Shown: piece after piece, positions 1,946-14,756 of the stretch
How positions within the stretch are numbered: position 1 is the first letter of the stretch
How the letters are laid out: the number at the start of each line of letters is the position of its first letter
NCBI GenBank assembly: GCA_025603075.1
Contig: MU626440.1
Location: 1 to 38,636 of the forward strand
Origin: Neoconidiobolus thromboides FSU 785
Taxonomy: Eukaryota; Fungi; Entomophthoromycota
Direction: 5' to 3'
DNA length: 38,636 nt
Position numbers and translations under genes: made by a program
Notes under the pieces: model-generated
Databases searched by the model: none
The model's input: the letters and a program-made list of their open reading frames with translations, nothing else
Told to the model about the DNA's origin: nothing

Positions 1946-2969
1946 TTAAATGGTTTCTTCTGGAAGTTCAAATTCATCAATCTCTTTAAATAATTCCACT
2001 TTTTTCTCAATTTCTTCTTCAATCTAAAAATGAGATATATTAATATTTTTATGATAAATTTTAATATTTACTTACATTTTTTTCAACTTTGACTCGATTT
2101 TTTCCTTTTTTGTTTTTTGTACCATATGTATTTTCTATATCGGTTGGCCTTTTATTTGCATTGATTGAATTTACACTAGTGTTATTTGAATTAGCCTTCT
2201 TTTCCTCAGTTTCTTGTTTGATTCTTCTGCTTAGCCTTGTATTTTTAGCAATTGGTTGATTGTTCACATCTGATTTCTGTTGATTAGTACTAATTTCCAA
2301 ACTACCAAAGCTACTATTTAAAGCTTCATCTTCTTGATTTTCTTGTTTATTAATAATATCTATTTCCTTCTTCACTTCAAATATATCATTATCTGGTCCA
2401 AAGACTTCCAAATAAGTATTAGCTCGTACTTTCTTTTCAGCAGCAAAAAATAAATTAGATAGATTCATACTTTTATCTTTATTTTTCGAGTCTTCTTCTT
2501 TTTTCATATCTATTGAATTCCTTCTAGTAGAACATCCAACTGCTACTTCTTCCAAAATATTAAAATCTTTATTTAAATCATAATTCTCAAAATCGTAATT
2601 TTCAACATTTCCAACAACTCCATTTTTTATTGATAACTCTTCAATAATTGATAATGCTTTTGAAGATCCACTACGTACACTATTTGTTCTTGAATATCTA
2701 CCTTTATCTCCCAAAGAGCCTAATAAACTATCTAAAGATAAATCTCTTTCAGTACCTTCTTCTTCATAAATATGACCCCCTTCGGTAAATGTGCTGGGTG
2801 TTTCACAACCTTCTAATAAATCCTTATTCTTTAATTCTAGTTGACCAAATACGATGTCAGTATCTTGGCTACTATCATTTACTATTCCATTATGATTGTT
2901 TCCATTTGAATGTACTTGATTAACAGTAGTATCCGCGTGTTTGACTTTCTTCCTTAAATTTCTCTTCAT
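1946..2969 (-). CDS. ~323-aa low-complexity protein with a Sororin-like C-terminal motif
   Basis: Exon 1 is 2969-2076 and a 52-nt GTAAGT...TTTTTAG intron spans 2075-2024 (phase 0). Exon 2, 2023-1946, encodes IEEEIEKKVELFKEIDEFELPEETI*. The CDS is well supported; the Sororin identity is inference. Confidence 0.7.
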
Positions 2970-3290
2970 AAAAAATAATAAAAATTAAAGTAAATTTTTG
3001 TTTACCAATTTTTGTTAATGAATCGTGATCATTAACATGACAACCAATCATACGCTTGAAATTATGGGATCTAATATTGATGAGTTTTCAAATACTAAGA
3101 ATGAACTATTCCAATGTAAAAACATCAAAATCAACAATAAAAGTCGCCAAATTTAGTAAATGAAATATATTTTTTGGTAATCAATGACCAATAAAAATCC
3201 AACTTTAAAAGCAAGGATAATTCGAATACAAAATCAACAAAATTAAGGGAGGAATTAAAAAAAGAAATTATTTTATTTTAAAATAATAAA
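2970..3290. promoter_or_regulatory. Bidirectional promoter shared by the Sororin-like gene and MCM4
   Basis: 321 bp between divergent ATGs, with four CCAAT boxes (3005, 3044, 3111, 3188) and an E2F-like TTTGGCG (minus strand, 3145-3151). Confidence 0.55.
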
Positions 3291-6215
3291 ATGTCCAACA
3301 ACAATACCCCACAGGATATATTTACACCAAATACTCAGGATGAAACACCATCTGAGCCAGCCTCCACCACCCCTGCATTAGCTAGTTTAGTTAATAGAGG
3401 TACACCTATGCTGAACATTGGTACCCCAGAAATTAATCCAAGTACACCTATTATTAATCCATTTGCTTCTGCAAATAGCGCTCGTTTTACACCATTACCA
3501 AATTCGTCTCAAAGTAATTTTCAAAATCCAAGTCAAAGACGTAATAACTTTGCTCCAGGTAAATCACTCTATTTTTATTAAATTTTATAATTTTAATTTA
3601 GTTTTTTATTAGATATGTCATCACCTTTAGTTTATCCTAATACTCAAGGAAGTAATCAATCCCCATTTTTAGTAAATACTCAAAGGTTTACAAGTACACC
3701 ACGTGTCAATCCTGGTTCCTCTCAATTATTTAATGACTTTGACACTCCAAGAATGTAGATATTTTATATTTTATTAAATAATCAAGTTATTAAGCTATTT
3801 TTTAATAGGTATCAACGAGGAGATGTTAATCCAGTTGGTTTAACTACTAGCTATGGTAGTTCTTCTGTACCTAATAATAATTCTCCAATGACACCTTTAG
3901 ATATTAATATCAATTTAAATAATGTACAAGGGCCAGTAGCACCAAGTGGAGATACTACACAAGTTATTTGGGGAACCACAGTGAATGTTCATGATTGCAT
4001 GAATCAATTTAGTCGCTTTTTAAATGAGTTTAAAAGAGAAGATTTTTTAAAATTGAATAATTTACCAGTATTAGAGGAAGATTTAAAACCATATTATATT
4101 GAACATATAAGTTCTATTGTTAATAATGACTTTTATAATTTAGATTTGGATTGTCAACATTTGTTAAGTTTTGAACCAACAATTCGATTATATTCTCAAT
4201 TAAAAAGTTACCCACAAGAAATTATTCCGTTAATGGATTATTGTTTAACTAATTTTTGTAATGAGTTATTAGAAAATAATTATGTTCGTACAATTCAAAG
4301 ACCATTAAGAGTACGTCCATTTAATCTAGGGAATAGTGTTAATATGAGAGAATTAAATCCAAAAGATATTGATCAATTAGTATCAATCAAAGGTTTATTA
4401 ATTCGTGCATCAAGTATTATTCCTGATATTAAAAAGGCTTATTTTCAATGTAAGATATGTGATCGTTCTTTATTTGTTGAAATCACCTCAGGAATTATAT
4501 TAGAACCAACTAAATGCCCCGAAGCAGCATGTCAAACTCCAAATTCAATGGTGATGATTCACAATCGTTGTATTTATGCTGATAAACAAATATCAAAATT
4601 ACAAGAAACTCCAGATATTATACCGGATGGTCAAACTCCACATTCAGTTTCTTTATGTCTTTATGATGAACTAGTAGATTCTTGTAAACCTGGTGATCGT
4701 TTAGAAGTTACTGGTGTATTTAGATCCACTCCTGTTCGTGTTAATCCACGTAAACGTACCGTTAAAGCATTATTTAAAACTTATATTGATGTAGTTCATA
4801 TAAAAACCATTACTTATGCTACTAAAAATGAAGCATCAACTAACAATGGTACAAGAAATAATGCTAGAATTAGTGAACGTGAAGTTGCTGAATTCGAAGA
4901 ATTGGCACGCTCAGAAGATGTTTATGAACGTTTAGCTAATTCAATTGCACCATCAATTTATGGTATGACTGATGTTAAAAAAGGTATATTACTTCAAATG
5001 TTTGGTGGGGAATCCAAATTATTTACTAATACCAATCAACGTCGTGCTAGAGGTGATATTCATATTTTATTAGTGGGTGATCCAGGTACTTCTAAATCTC
5101 AAATGTTACAATATGCTCATAGAATTGCGCCAAGAGGTATGTATACTAGTGGTAAAGGTTCTTCAGCTGTGGGTCTTACTGCTTACATAACACGTGACCC
5201 AGATACCAATCAATTAGTATTGGAATCTGGTGCCCTTGTTTTATCAGATGGTGGATTGTGTTGTATTGATGAGTTTGATAAAATGAGCGATGGTACAAGA
5301 TCTATTTTACATGAAGTTATGGAACAACAAACAGTATCTGTAGCTAAAGCAGGAATTATTACTACATTAAATGCTAGAACTTCCATTTTAGCTAGTGCTA
5401 ATCCAATTAATTCCAGTTGGTTAAGAGATTTATCTGTACCTCAAAATATTAATTTACCACCCTCTTTATTATCTAGGTTTGATTTAATTTATCTTATTTT
5501 AGATAAAGTCAATCCAGATGAAGATAGAAGACTTGCTCAACATTTAGTTTCTTTATATATTAATTCTAATGAGAGTCTTGTTGAAGGGAATTATTTACCA
5601 ACTCATACACTTAGTCGATATGTACAATATGCTAAGAGTACAAGAACTGAAATAACTGATGAAGCATCTAATAAATTAGTTAAAAACTATGTGGAATTAC
5701 GTAATCTAGGTAAAGAAAACTATAATCAAGAAACTCGAATTACAGCTACTACACGACAATTGGAATCTTTGATAAGATTATCTGAAGCTCATGCTAAAAT
5801 GAGATTAAGTCAATATGTAGAAGAAATGGATGTTGAAGAAGCATTTCGATTGTTAAGAGCAGCTATTCATTCTTCTGCAACTAATCCTAAAACAGGTAAA
5901 ATTGAATTAGATCAATTAGTAACAGGTATTTCTAGTGAAACTCGAGAAATTCGTAAACAAATTCAAAAAGCTATTGTCGAATTATTAGGTCAATCTGAGA
6001 ACCCAGTTCAATATTCAAGTAACCAACTAATTACCATTTTAAAAAACAATGCAGCTGCTTCTGGTCTTGTTGTTACTAAAACCGATTTTGAAGAAGCTAT
6101 TAATGAATTAGTTTCGAAAAATTTTGTTTTAAGTCAAGGTTCTCAAATGCGTGGAGGTCAACGTATGTTAACTCGTAATTTTGATAGAGGGTTTATATTG
6201 GAAGAAGATGATTAA
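3291..6215 (+). CDS. MCM4: DNA replication licensing factor MCM4 (~938 aa)
   Basis: Exons 3291-3558, 3613-3754, 3809-6215. SP/TP-rich N-tail, C4 zinc finger (CKIC...CPEAAC), Walker A GDPGTSKSQ, IDEFDKM and arginine finger SRFD. QVIWGT and DMSSPL are typical of MCM4. Confidence 0.97.
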
Positions 6216-8143: not shown

Positions 8144-11100
8144 ATGGAGGCATTAAAAACAATCAAAAATGAAGTTATTGGAAATCGAACTAAAAAGAAT
8201 TTATATGTACAAATTGGATTAATACCAAAGTAAATATATTATTGTTGTATATTAATTAAGAATGATTAAAGAGATTTAATACTTTAATTAAATTAGAATT
8301 ATTCAAATCATCTATACTAAAGAAGAAGAAAGCATGTCCGTGATTATTCAAGCGGTTATTGTTTTAGGTAGTTTAGCTTATGGTAAGAGATAAGAATTTA
8401 ACTGAAAGAAGAATTAAAAGAAGAATTAAAATAAAATCTATTTAATTTTAGGCTCCCCTGAAATAGTAAATGAATTAGTCCAACATAAAGCCATAGCCTC
8501 ATTGGTAGGGTGTATTGACTTAAATAAATATCCTTTAGAGTTAATCGAAGCAGCATCAAGGTCTTTAAAAGCATTATTACAACATTCTAAAGTAGATAGC
8601 GGCTTGATTTATAAGGTAAATAATTAGTAAAATAGAACAAAAAAAAGAATTTAAAGAAAATCATTTTCTATTTTTTTAGGATCCAAACTTGAAAAATATA
8701 ATATCATTATTAGAAATCAATGATTTAGATATTGATATTGAAAAAAAGCAAATACCTACTTTACATACAGCCGAATTAGCCGCTTTAATTTTAGCTAAAA
8801 GTTGTGATACTAATGATCGACAAAATCAACTAAAATCAAGAGATGTGATCCCATTATTGATTAATTTATTACAATCTAATTCTACTAAAGTAAGAATTAA
8901 AATCAATAAGATTTAAATTAGATAAAAACTGACAGAACTGATTTTTTATAGGCTAAAGAGGCCGCTTTGTTAGCTTTATCAGCTTTATGTAAAAAAAATA
9001 TTGATGTAGGGAGATGGGCTTTGACTATTCAATGTAAACCCAATATATTTATTAACATAAATTCGTAATCTTTTTTATTTAAAATTAGCTACTGGACCTG
9101 TTCCAACTGTCGATTTATTACTTAGTTTTGTACGTTCAATGAGTCCATCAATTCAATTAGCAGCTGCTTCTTGGTAAATTATTATTGTTATTTACTACCT
9201 AATTATTAAAATTTAATTTATTATTATTATTAAGTTTAACCAATTTACTACGATCTAAAGCATTGGAAGATAAAAATAGTGAAGTAGCTTTGATTTTAAT
9301 TCCAACCTTAGTCAAACTCCTTGAAGCCAATGGAAGCGTAAAAATAGAAGCGCCATTAATATTATCTGAATTAGTAGCGGAAGATGAAAAATTACAAAAA
9401 ACAGCGTGTGATTTAGATGCTATTACCAAATTATCAGAAGCCATTTCTAAGTTATCGGAATACAAACAGAACATTAATAATTTTTTTTATTATCAGCCAA
9501 AAGATAAGGATTTGTTCGAAGAAAATTCATTGATTGCTTTAGCTTCTATTGGTTCCTTAACAGAAGAATGTAGGGAGGCAGTAAAATTCTTTTAATATTT
9601 AAAATTGAGATTTATTTATATGTCTTTTTATTATTATTAAATTAAGATAATTGAAGCCAAATGTATGCCACGAATTATTGATGCTATATCTCATCCAAAA
9701 ACAGGAGTTAGAGCAGCAGCTTGTCAATGTGTAAGGTCATTATCAAGATCGGTTAGATACTTAAGAACGGAATTAATGGATGCTGGCTTATTTAAACCTT
9801 TGTTTAAGGTGAGTTTTTATATTATTATTGTTATTATTGTTTAAAATGAACAATAAAATTAATACAATATTTTTATTTAATTATGAATTTTTAGTTATTA
9901 GATGATGAAGATATAACTGTCAAAAGTGTAGCTGTGTCTACTTTGTGTAATGTAGTATTAAAATTTTCACCAATGAAAACAGTAAGAGTTAATTAATAGC
10001 AATGGAACTAACAGATATTAAATGTTTTATTTTTTATTTATTTTATCATTAGGATATTGTACAAAATGGAGGTATTGAAAAATTGGTAGCATTAGTTGAT
10101 GCATCAGATAAAGAATTAAGTTTGAATGCTATATGGGCATTAAAAAATTTAATCTTTAAATCAGATCCCTCAGTAAAAAGAAGTTTAATGTCAATTTTAG
10201 CTTATTCTAGGTTGGAAGAGTAAGTATTAATTGTATATTAAAAATAGACTATGTATTAATGAAATTTTTTTTCATTTAGATTTATTCTTAATGGATTGCC
10301 TGATGTACAAGAGCAGACATTAGGATTAGTCAGAAACCTATCATGTGGAGAGGAACCAGTAAGTTGGAATATTATAAAAAAGAATAGAATAAAAATAATT
10401 TTGATTTTTTTTAGGATCTTGATGAGTTGATTAATGGAATGGGTAGTAAAAGATTAGTTTCTTTATTAGAAAAGAAATTAGAATCTAATTTTACTAATAT
10501 TAAAATACAAGTAATTTAATTAATTTAATTATTCATATTTTTTTAAAATAATATACTAATATTATATTTTTATTTATTCATTAGACAATGTTTTGTGTAG
10601 TTAATATATCTACTGGAAATAAAGAACATAAATCTTTTATTATGAATTCAGGTAGTATTTTAACTAGTGTTAGAAGTGCTTTGGTAAGATTTATTAATTT
10701 GATACTATTAAATTAATATTAATCTTTATTTTAGAATCATGCTAATCAACAAGTAAGAGTAGCTGCAATTTGGGTAGTAATAAATTTGAGTTGGATTGAC
10801 GATAATCAAGAAGGTAGATTAATAATAATATATAATACAAAATCTTATTGGTTTTTTATTTTTCATTAAATATAGAATGTTTTCAAAGAATACGAAAATT
10901 AAAAGCAATGGGATTTGAAAGATTATTAGAAAATTTAGCTAAAGATAATAGCTTAGATGTTAAAGATAGAGCAAGAACAGCATTAAGTCATTTTAAAGCA
11001 GAGGCTCAACATGCCTTTGGTAACCGTAATATTGGATTTGAAAATCAAAGAAGATCGATTATTAGAGATCAACACAATCGAGACAATTTTTTAGATGATG

Positions 11101-11216
11101 AAGGTAAAATAATAATAATAATAATAATACATACATACTATAAAATTTAAGTTTAATGATAACGTAATTATGATATATTAATAATATTATTTATTTTAGG
11201 ACCTTTTGATCGATAA
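8144..11216 (+). CDS. ARMC8: Armadillo-repeat protein ARMC8/Vid28 (GID/CTLH E3 ligase subunit GID5)
   Basis: Multi-exon gene. N-terminal LKTIKNEVIGNRTKK, internal VRAAACQCVRSLSRSVRYLRT and LNAIWALKNL, C-terminal VRVAAIWVVINLSW. Last exon 11200-11216. Confidence 0.85.
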
Positions 11217-11324
11217 ATTTTTATTTTATCTTATTTTATTTTATTTCAGGATTCTCGATTCCTTTTTTTATTATTAAATTAAAACAATTTTATTTTTGTA
11301 ATTCTATTAATTTTAATTTTAATT

Positions 11325-13372
11325 TTAATTTTTTATCATTATTGAACCTAAACATTGTTGATCAACAGAATATAAAACTAAATACTAAAATAAAAAATTA
11401 ATTTTAATTTTAATAAATATATTCAATAATAGAATAATAACTAACAAAAACTTACTTGTCCAGCTACAATACCACGCTGAGTATTTAAAAAATAAATTTT
11501 ATAATTGTTTTTAATTGAATTATAATATAAATAACATTTTTGTAATTTCATTGTGGATCTTAATTTAAAATAATAAAGTTGATATTTGTTAGCTAAAATA
11601 TAATAAAATTTTGAGTTAGTTTTGAATTAATATGAGGTAAATATATTATAAAATTAAAGATAATTTACTTTTTAATTCCTCTGGTATTTCTTCTAATATC
11701 CAATCAATTGAAGGAAGTATTAACTCAGATTGATACAATTTAGGATGGTTTCTAATAAATATAGATTAAATAGGTTAAATCGTTTTTAATCAAAATATAC
11801 AATTTACCTATCTGGAGCTACAATTAATAAATTATTTTCAATATCTTTAGAAATTATATAATACCTAATATGAAAGATATTATTAATATTATAATGAAAT
11901 TATTAGAGTTATTTTAAATTAACAATTATTACTTTTTAGATTTAAAACTTAATCTTAATCGTTGTCCGATTGTATAACTCCATATACCATCATGATAATC
12001 TAAGATAATAGTATTATTGTTGCTAATAAGTAATTCTCTTATTATTTTAATTAAGTTACCAATAAATTCATTTTCAGTAGTTATAATTTTACCAGGATTA
12101 TTAGAAATATAACTATCTAATAACAAATAATAAATTCGATTTATTCTATTATTATATTATATTATATTGCAATATCATTTTTGTTTCTATTAATACATAT
12201 TAACTTACTTAAAAATTCATTAAATTTTTTCTTTTTACCAATAAAACAAATGCCCATAGACTCGGCTTGTTCTGAAATACTTGTCAATCCTATTTTTTTA
12301 GCTATTTGTTTGACTTCTGTTTTATAATAGCAGCCCAAAGGGAAGAGAACCTATAAGAGATTATTAATATATTCTATTAGTTATACAAATATGATTTTAT
12401 CATTATTTACATTTTTAAATTGATATTGTTTTAAGTTAGATAAATAGTATGTTTGATCTTTTACTGGATCAATTGCTAATATAATAATTAAATTAGTATT
12501 GACAGAGAATAATATTGAATAGTTAATTTTATATTTACCTTGAAATAACTGATATTTATTATTACTTTGATTATACTTTAGTTGAGCGTAATGACCTTAA
12601 TAATAATAAAACGAATTAACATAATTAAATAAGACTCATAATTAAAAAGATTAATTTACCAGTAGCTAACCAAATATTATTATGTTGCTGAATATTCAAT
12701 CTTTGAATTAAACTATCAAATTTAATAAAATTATTACAAATTATATCTGGGTTAGGAGTTAATCCTATTGAATATTCAAAGATCATTTTTTCAAACACAA
12801 AATTCCAATAATCTTTAATAAAATTTAACTAAAAAAATAAAAAGATTAACATCCTGTTATAAATAACAATATTCATTTAATAATAATAGGTTTAATACGG
12901 GAGAATGTAATAAATAAGTTATTTAGAAATAAATAAAAATAATATATATAAAAGCTTACTCTTTTACAAGGAATCTTTAAATAATTGGCTATATTTTGTA
13001 CTTTTTCCCATTCTTTTTCACAACTTGAATCCAAACTTCCTTCTTCCTTAACATCCCAATTTTGCATATAGATTCCTTGAACATTTAAACCCTAAATTGA
13101 TTGTTATTCTGTTTTCTTAAATAAAACAAAACTATCATCGACTTACTTTCTCTTTTAATAAATAAGCTGTAACAGTTGAGTCCACTCCACCAGACATAGC
13201 TACATAAACTGTACAAGTCGAGTTTAGTTGATATTATAATTGTGGAATTGATTTTAATAACAATGTTAAACTTACCCAAATCCTTTTCTTTATTAACATG
13301 ATTTGTACTAACCGTTGTCCATTTTCTAATAATATTTAAACTAATATTTAATCTATCGATATTAAATTTCAT
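11325..13372 (-). CDS. SLM3: Mitochondrial tRNA-specific 2-thiouridylase (MnmA/TRMU/Slm3)
   Basis: Spliced motifs in order: AMSGGVDS, GIYMQNWD, TPNPDIICNNFIKF, ATG|HYA, KDQTYYL, ESMGICFIG, HDGIWSYTIGQR, RGIVAGQ|YLVLY, CLGSIMI. The N-terminal extension is consistent with a targeting peptide. Confidence 0.92.
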
Positions 13373-13558
13373 ATTCTATAATTTTATAGTTTTATAATTC
13401 TAAACTGTAAATAAATAAACCAAAAAACTCTTAAAAAAAGCTTCAAAAAATGGACGATTTTTATTCATTTATTATATTCATAAAACCTAGGAACCAATAA
13501 TATTGAATTTTGTTTGAATCTTTTTTTAAAAAAGTCATCCGAGAATCTTAATTTCTAA

Positions 13559-14756
13559 TTAATTCCTACGATAATACCTATTATCTCTTGCTAAATTTCT
13601 TGCATTATACGGTTCCCTGGGAGCGGAATATTTCCTATACGGTGCTTGTTGATTACCGATATAACCTCTATTTTCCATATTATACCCTCTATTTTCATAA
13701 AATCGTCCATTGTTTCTTCTCACATCACTTATTCTTCTAGTTTCTTCACTTTTAACAGGATTAAGAGGCTGTGGAGGAAGGATAGCAATCGACAAATAAT
13801 CTCCAATAAAAAATTTTAATTCAGCTAATGTTTTATCATCAGCAATCGATCTTCTACCATATATAACTGCACCCGCATCTTTCGCTGAATATTTTCGTAA
13901 ATTACTATCATAATATACAATCTTGAAGGAAACCACATTATCTTTTTGAATTTCTTGTTGATAAACGTGTTTTAATAAAAGACTAAGTTCACCAAGGCTA
14001 GTATTTTTCCTATAAGAAAAGAATTAAAGTTAACTGATTGATAGTGGGAACAGAATGCTTTTGACTTACCATGCATGCAAACGTATTTCTTCTTCTAAAG
14101 GCAATAAATCATCTCCAAACTCTAGTAAACTAAATTAAAACATTAATTTTAATTGTTCTACTTTACTATTCCAATTTTATAACTTACCTATGATGAGAAC
14201 CTTCTCTACAAAATAAACGTAACAGAAAGGGACATATCTAAAATAATTAGTTGATTACACTTATTTTTAAATATAATTTGAAATCAATTTCACTTACTTT
14301 ATTTCTAGTTTCATTTAACCGTTTGTATTTTTCTAAGTGTTGCGTACTACCCTGTTGATTTTCCAATCTCTCATTGTCATGTTCTTGCTTAATGTTCTCC
14401 GATCCTTGATGAAATTGAGGGTGTTGAATATTTTCAGTTACATTATTATTCTCTTCACCCATGTTTTCAGTTTTACTATGGCTTTGAGTATCGTTGTTAT
14501 CTTTGATGGGGCTTTTGCTTCCATCCCTTATATTTTCATTCAAATTATTACTTTCACTATGAGCATCAACTTCATTATTACTTTGGGATTCGATTGGATT
14601 TTCAACAATTTCTTTATGTTCTTCATTTTTAGTTTCAATTTCAGTTTCATTATGAGATTGGCTTTGTTCATTATTTTCGATAATAATACTATTCTTTTCC
14701 ATTATATTTTGATTACTATTATTAACTTCTTGATGTTCCATATTATTAGCTTGCAT
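13559..14756 (-). CDS. SAP18: SAP18 (Sin3-associated/ASAP-PSAP subunit) with long N- and C-terminal extensions (~339 aa)
   Basis: Exons 14756-14298, 14237-14188, 14129-14070, 14009-13559. Motifs KICPFLLRLF..HH, EIRLHAWKNTSLGEL and DDKTLAELKFFIGDYLSIAI. Confidence 0.88.

Follow-up and report, generated by a model that had tools for sequence, protein, structure and literature searches.

We identify, with moderate confidence, the gene read from the minus strand at positions 1946-2969 of the window (the whole stretch of 38,636 nucleotides that was analysed, contig C183 of Neoconidiobolus thromboides FSU 785, with a G+C content of about 25-30%) as the N. thromboides orthologue of Sororin, represented by Sor1 in S. 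pombe, AtSORORIN in Arabidopsis and CDCA5 in vertebrates. The Sororin assignment, which goes back to an earlier note on this DNA, holds in that Sororin_C is the sole Pfam family matched, the gene is the sole candidate in the genome, a C-terminal box is accompanied by a basic cluster, a helix and a disordered body, and Sororin clusters recur among the neighbours of the protein in the ESM Atlas; it falls short in the profile HMM score, which stays below the cut-off and covers half of the profile.

The gene consists of two exons separated by a short intron (Table 1). If the intron is retained, the frame stops after four codons (VSKY and the stop), giving an ORF of 302 aa, while splicing of exon 1 to exon 2 yields a product of 323 aa, which is exactly the public NCBI/JGI protein K502DRAFT_343827, annotated as "hypothetical protein". 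The two-exon structure with the 52-nt intron (2075-2024) proposed in the earlier note thus reads as claimed, but the description of the terminal exon as cryptic was wrong: the public 323-aa model already contains it, so that it is cryptic to an ORF track only. In all analyses of the spliced protein the public record was used. The size of the intron is typical for this genome, because two introns of the Scc1 gene (with GTAATT...TAG ends) are 52 and 48 nt long. No paralogues were found in the genome and the gene is single-copy. Eight sequencing runs hold between 0.17 and 0.69 of the words of the stretch, their status as RNA being guessed; shares of 0.58-0.69 in the listed runs would fit transcripts, subject to the same guess.

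Table 1. Coordinates of the Sororin candidate gene, its sequence features and the adjacent MCM4 gene in the window.
Feature	Positions	Strand	Description
Terminal exon 2	1946..2023	-	25 codons and the stop codon (1946-1948); translation IEEEIEKKVELFKEIDEFELPEETI followed by the stop
Sororin-box core	1955..1990	-	residues 310-321, FKEIDEFELPEE; matches positions 13-24 of the 24 in Sororin_C
Intron	2024..2075	-	52 nt, GTAAGT...TTTTTAG; length not divisible by 3
Exon 1	2076..2969	-	298 codons, ATG at 2969, ends ...VEKN; disordered body; no Pfam family
Basic K/R cluster	2082..2129	-	residues 281-296, TYGTKNKKGKNRVKVE; 6 K/R in 15; immediately before the C-terminal helix
YSR tripeptide	2688..2696	-	Y92-S93-R94 in GRYSRT (RYSR 91-94); possible Pds5-interaction motif
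Intergenic region	2970..3290	.	321 bp, head-to-head with MCM4, common to both genes
MCM4	3291..6215	+	first exon from 3291, then the main exon with a 775-aa ORF (3888-6215)

The tail of the protein reads F310-K-E-I-D-E-F316-E-L-P-E-E321, followed by T-I and the stop codon, which places the box two residues from the stop. The F310-x5-F316-x-L318-x2-E321 spacing at the extreme C-terminus, to which the earlier note had drawn attention, is therefore present in the 323-aa protein. The consensus of the animal Sororin box comprises a first half, [W/F/Y]xxx-phi-N, and a second half, FxE[A/phi][E/D]x[F/Y]ELx-phi-E (PMC10656103). The N. thromboides sequence fits the second half at 11 of its 12 positions, with E at the phi position 320 as the misfit. 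The first half is unmatched: residues 302-309 (EIEKKVEL) contain neither an aromatic residue nor Asn, and there is no aromatic side chain at the place equivalent to human W233, whose predicted position is on Scc1. Sororin boxes have been reported to vary considerably across kingdoms (PMC10656103).

The profile HMM analysis of exon 2 alone reported a single family, Pfam Sororin_C (PF25220, a model of 24 positions; 17.6 bits, E-value 0.0036), and the complete K502DRAFT_343827 was matched by the same profile at residues 310-321 (13.5 bits, E-value 0.072). The search with a Sororin C-terminal HMM, suggested in the earlier note, thus supports the assignment as far as the family is concerned, but not at the level of significance set by the database: the scores of 13.5-17.6 bits are below the gathering cut-off of 27.4 bits and only positions 13-24 of the profile are aligned, with positions 1-12 unmatched. 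Published candidates obtained Sororin_C scores of 14.7 bits (A. thaliana), 17.7 bits (Yarrowia), 20.9 bits (Lipomyces) and 13.5 bits (Pyrenophora) (PMC11148194), and on a proteome scale the score of the N. thromboides protein is within the range of these fungal and plant candidates. We regard the cut-off as a statistical rather than a biological criterion, because the published fungal and plant members were themselves first found at similar sub-threshold scores. Readings of the tail as a LIR, a SIM or a PIP-box were rejected, as its spacing fits none of them. Comparison of the tail with PDB chains gave no match at E-values up to 10.

An alternative, which we consider possible but unlikely, is that K502DRAFT_343827 is a disordered orphan, its function unrelated or unknown, and that the likeness of its acidic-aromatic tail to half a Sororin box is fortuitous. 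The bias of this AT-rich genome towards E, K, I, F and N would help such a tail to arise, and the sub-threshold score over half of the profile agrees with this possibility, as does the six-frame Sororin_C search of the whole 24.6-Mb genome, in which the terminal exon was the only candidate (16 bits) with a genome-wide E-value of 0.53. A Sororin_C match at a similar level was obtained in one of the 14 control prokaryote genomes. The same caution follows from a motif control, in which the genome was searched for F-x-E-x-[DE]-x-[FY]-E-[LF], relaxed at the DNA level, and for the reversed pattern, the two proving about equally frequent (6 vs. 7 matches in six frames). Of the six matches, three are interrupted by stop codons, one falls within a carbonic anhydrase and one in a non-coding frame; only the copy in terminal exon 2 is found at the end of a coding frame and at a real C-terminus, which argues against coincidence. 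Moreover, a stricter form of the motif is expected near the C-terminus in 5e-6 of random 323-aa proteins of the same composition, that is in at most about 0.05 proteins per proteome if about 10,000 proteins are assumed, these figures being partly post hoc because the matched half of the consensus was chosen.

A fortuitous origin of the tail is also favoured by the results of the database searches, none of which detected a homologue besides the protein itself: this was the outcome of a word search with exon 1 (5.8 billion proteins), a full HMMER search (1.84 billion representatives), a word search with the tail (residues 280-323) and a scan of metagenome contigs. Failure to find homologues is common for Sororins. 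On the other side of the balance, the nearest language-model neighbours repeatedly include Sororin clusters. In the ESM Atlas the neighbours of the whole protein include clusters from arthropods (Sororin_middle), chordates (Sororin_C and Sororin_middle) and plants (Sororin_C), with scores of 0.80-0.84, and the named clusters ranked first and second for residues 236-323 both carry Sororin_C (scores 0.78 and 0.77), where any score below 0.9 rates as a lead only. The Atlas neighbours probably respond to the motif that the HMM also recognises and therefore do not constitute independent evidence; the profile, the genome search, the consensus fit, the motif control and the Atlas all rest on the same 12 residues and are thus not independent of one another.

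The features found behind the motif also speak against a chance resemblance, as a basic cluster and a confidently predicted helix in this position correspond to the published Sororin architecture. Sororins have been described as short proteins of weak conservation in which a K/R stretch and a linker precede a C-terminal box (Prusén Mota et al., PMC11148194), and the architecture of the 323-aa protein is in agreement with this description. In addition to the basic cluster listed in Table 1, a second K/R cluster is found at residues 238-255. The AF2 model has a mean pLDDT of 46.7 for the 323 residues, in accord with the disorder that the earlier note had ascribed to the rest of the protein, and its best block (pLDDT 75) falls within an approximately six-turn helix (residues 292-314), which continues into the box. 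This is the amphipathic helix expected in the earlier note to precede the motif; its hydrophobic moment is 0.47-0.50, a value reached by 3.8% of the shuffled sequences. The YSR tripeptide noted earlier in the GRYSRT context is indeed there, with a probability of occurring by chance of about 0.023 in a protein of the same composition, and three phi-FG motifs were found (FGQ at 41, FGP at 190 and FGS at 221). The lack of a canonical FGF and of a KEN box in the 323-aa protein, together with the presence of a single S/T-P site, counts against the Sororin assignment; RxxL is likewise missing. The Pds5-binding FGF and YSR motifs are vertebrate features and not universal, and the KEN box, a signal for degradation through APC/C-Cdh1, is a metazoan feature. 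S. pombe Sor1 and AtSORORIN have neither KEN nor RxxL, and the plant protein lacks FGF too (PMC11148194), hence the missing KEN box is not disqualifying.

A non-orthologous protein with a convergent Sororin-like short linear motif, which would bind cohesin in another role, e.g. in replication-coupled or meiotic chromosome biology, is an improbable explanation: plant Haspin has been reported to carry YFRDIDAFE, very close to LFKEIDEFE (PMC11148194), possible convergence of the motif has been noted in a survey of SMC complexes (10.1101/2024.01.07.573240) and the body of the N. thromboides protein shows no similarity to any Sororin, but the protein contains no other domain, its size, disorder, basic cluster and terminal position of the motif are those of bona fide Sororins, and the genome offers no better Sororin candidate.

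Analysis of the genomic neighborhood revealed that the head-to-head pairing of the candidate gene with MCM4, pointed out in the earlier note, is real: the first exon of MCM4 begins at 3291, 321 bp from the ATG at 2969, and the product of the main ORF (3888-6215) scores 796 bits to yeast Mcm4 vs. about 375 bits to other MCMs. The intergenic region contains four ATTGG pentamers (CCAAT on the + strand) at 3005-3009, 3044-3048, 3111-3115 and 3188-3192, and a near-consensus E2F-like element, TTTGGCGA, on the minus strand at 3144-3151. Positions 3252-3289 form an A/T-rich part of the promoter. As to co-regulation of the candidate gene with MCM4, we only infer it.

Genes for the cohesin machinery were located in the same genome, which favours the Sororin assignment. 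Smc1 (contig C344) was identified by comparison with solved structures and Smc3 (contig C13) by elimination, with Smc2 assigned to contig C260 and Smc4 to contig C226, and by conserved exon peptides. Scc1 is encoded on contig C55, with an intron after 45 aa of its N-terminal domain, Eco1 on contig C182, and Pds5 on contig C2; the genes for Scc1 and Pds5 are both divided into many short exons. The Smc3 gene (about 9600-14500 of its contig, locus L023) comprises roughly twenty exons or more, each about 20-60 codons long, whereas Smc4 keeps an exon of 709 codons and MCM4 one of 775 codons, which means that intron density differs sharply among genes of comparable age and function. WAPL, against which Sororin acts, would be expected in the genome of a Sororin carrier, but its profile PF07814 gave no match in a six-frame search of the complete genome, a result that cannot demonstrate absence where genes are intron-rich; WAPL may be very divergent, split over small exons, or missing. 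In animal Pds5, the APEAP/APDAP loop binds YSR motifs. The first exon of the N. thromboides Pds5 gene (locus L030:456-773) has VPDVPYT in place of this loop, with both alanines replaced by valines.

By analogy with published work on other Sororins, the Sororin box of the N. thromboides protein would dock on the junction between the neck/head of Smc3 and the N-terminal domain of Scc1, with F310 and F316 sitting against an Smc3 helix. In the docked state it would hold the exit gate of cohesin shut after replication and thereby oppose the release of cohesin from DNA. Additional contacts, with Pds5 and its loop of the VPDVPYT type in this genome, might be made by the RYSR sequence and by the three phi-FG motifs. 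A pairing of the tail with Scc1 exons alone would not discriminate, as an amphipathic helix offered to Scc1 without the Smc3 neck would probably settle on the exposed Scc1 helix, whether it belongs to a Sororin or not. The supply of the protein in S phase may come from the 321-bp promoter in common with MCM4 and not from a KEN box, which is absent. We also entertain, as a very doubtful extension, a Zoopagomycota Sororin without KEN, with almost no Cdk sites and in the company of a WAPL undetectable with Pfam, which would be supplied in S phase through the bidirectional MCM4 promoter and might, independently of WAPL, have a stabilising effect on the Smc3-Scc1 gate.

If the Sororin assignment is correct, K502DRAFT_343827 gains a testable function in place of "hypothetical protein", and Sororin is extended to Entomophthoromycotina (Zoopagomycota), one more fungal lineage in an already widespread family. 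Orthologues have been published for S. pombe, Pezizomycotina, Lipomyces, Yarrowia and plants (PMC11148194), the Sororin of Sordaria has been studied (PMC12758814), and for animals, plants and Aspergillus a co-fold has been predicted in which the box is paired with the head/neck of Smc3 and the N-terminal domain of Scc1 (PMC10656103). A eukaryote-wide survey, which warns that Sororin-like motifs can arise by convergence, inferred the presence of Sororin in LECA; it scored the protein as present in Mortierella and Neocallimastix and as absent from Coemansia, Ramicandelaber, Spizellomyces, Gonapodya, Allomyces and Umbelopsis, and both Zoopagomycota it included, in which Sororin was scored absent, are Kickxellomycotina (10.1101/2024.01.07.573240). 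A Sororin in Entomophthoromycotina would fill this gap and therefore modestly strengthen the published LECA inference. The expectation in the earlier note that such a gene would be informative about the age of WAPL antagonism has, however, been overtaken, as fungal and plant Sororins are already published (PMC11148194) and a LECA Sororin is already inferred (10.1101/2024.01.07.573240). No new question is opened, because fungal Sororins (Sor1 of S. pombe, the Sordaria protein, the AlphaFold models for Aspergillus) and WAPL antagonism are established. Literature searches found no report pairing Sororin with Conidiobolus, and Sororin is unmentioned in the best-ranked literature on Zoopagomycota, Mucoromycota, Entomophthoromycotina and early-diverging fungi.

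Vertebrate Sororin (CDCA5) and insect Dalmatian have in common with the N. thromboides protein the second half of the box, the six-turn helix, the basic stretch before the box and the YSR tripeptide. In contrast, the first half of the N. thromboides box is without the aromatic residue and the phi-N, the protein has neither KEN nor FGF, and it possesses one S/T-P site where the animal proteins have many Cdk sites. The distance from YSR to the nearest downstream FG also differs, being about 100-130 residues in the N. thromboides protein vs. about 10 in CDCA5 and Dalmatian.

AtSORORIN (At3g56250) and the plant Sororin_C cluster resemble the N. thromboides protein in carrying a C-terminal box after a basic stretch and in lacking both FGF and KEN. 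For residues 236-323 no named language-model cluster is nearer than this plant cluster, 72% of whose members carry Sororin_C, and the plant-type wording F-R-D-I-D-A-F-E (from plant Haspin) is close to F-K-E-I-D-E-F-E of the N. thromboides protein. However, the proteins of the plant cluster are shorter (about 144 aa), and the likeness is one of motif pattern.

Sor1 of S. pombe (SPAC9E9.05) differs from the N. thromboides protein in that no similarity is detectable outside the box, in that its box has one Phe where that of N. thromboides has two, as in animals and plants, and in a putative FGF, in place of which the N. thromboides protein has FGQ, FGP and FGS only. On the other hand, the two proteins share a short length (313 vs. 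323 aa), poor conservation, a mostly disordered state and the lack of a KEN box, and in both the box comes after a K/R-rich stretch and leaves two or three residues up to the stop. The function of Sor1 requires F299, V302, D303 and Y305 (PMC11148194); compared by the published residue numbers rather than by alignment, these four residues correspond in spacing and chemistry to F310, I313, D314 and F316 of the N. thromboides protein. The strength of the evidence for the Sororin assignment in N. thromboides equals that at which the Sororin genes of S. pombe and Arabidopsis were first picked, both of which were later validated experimentally.
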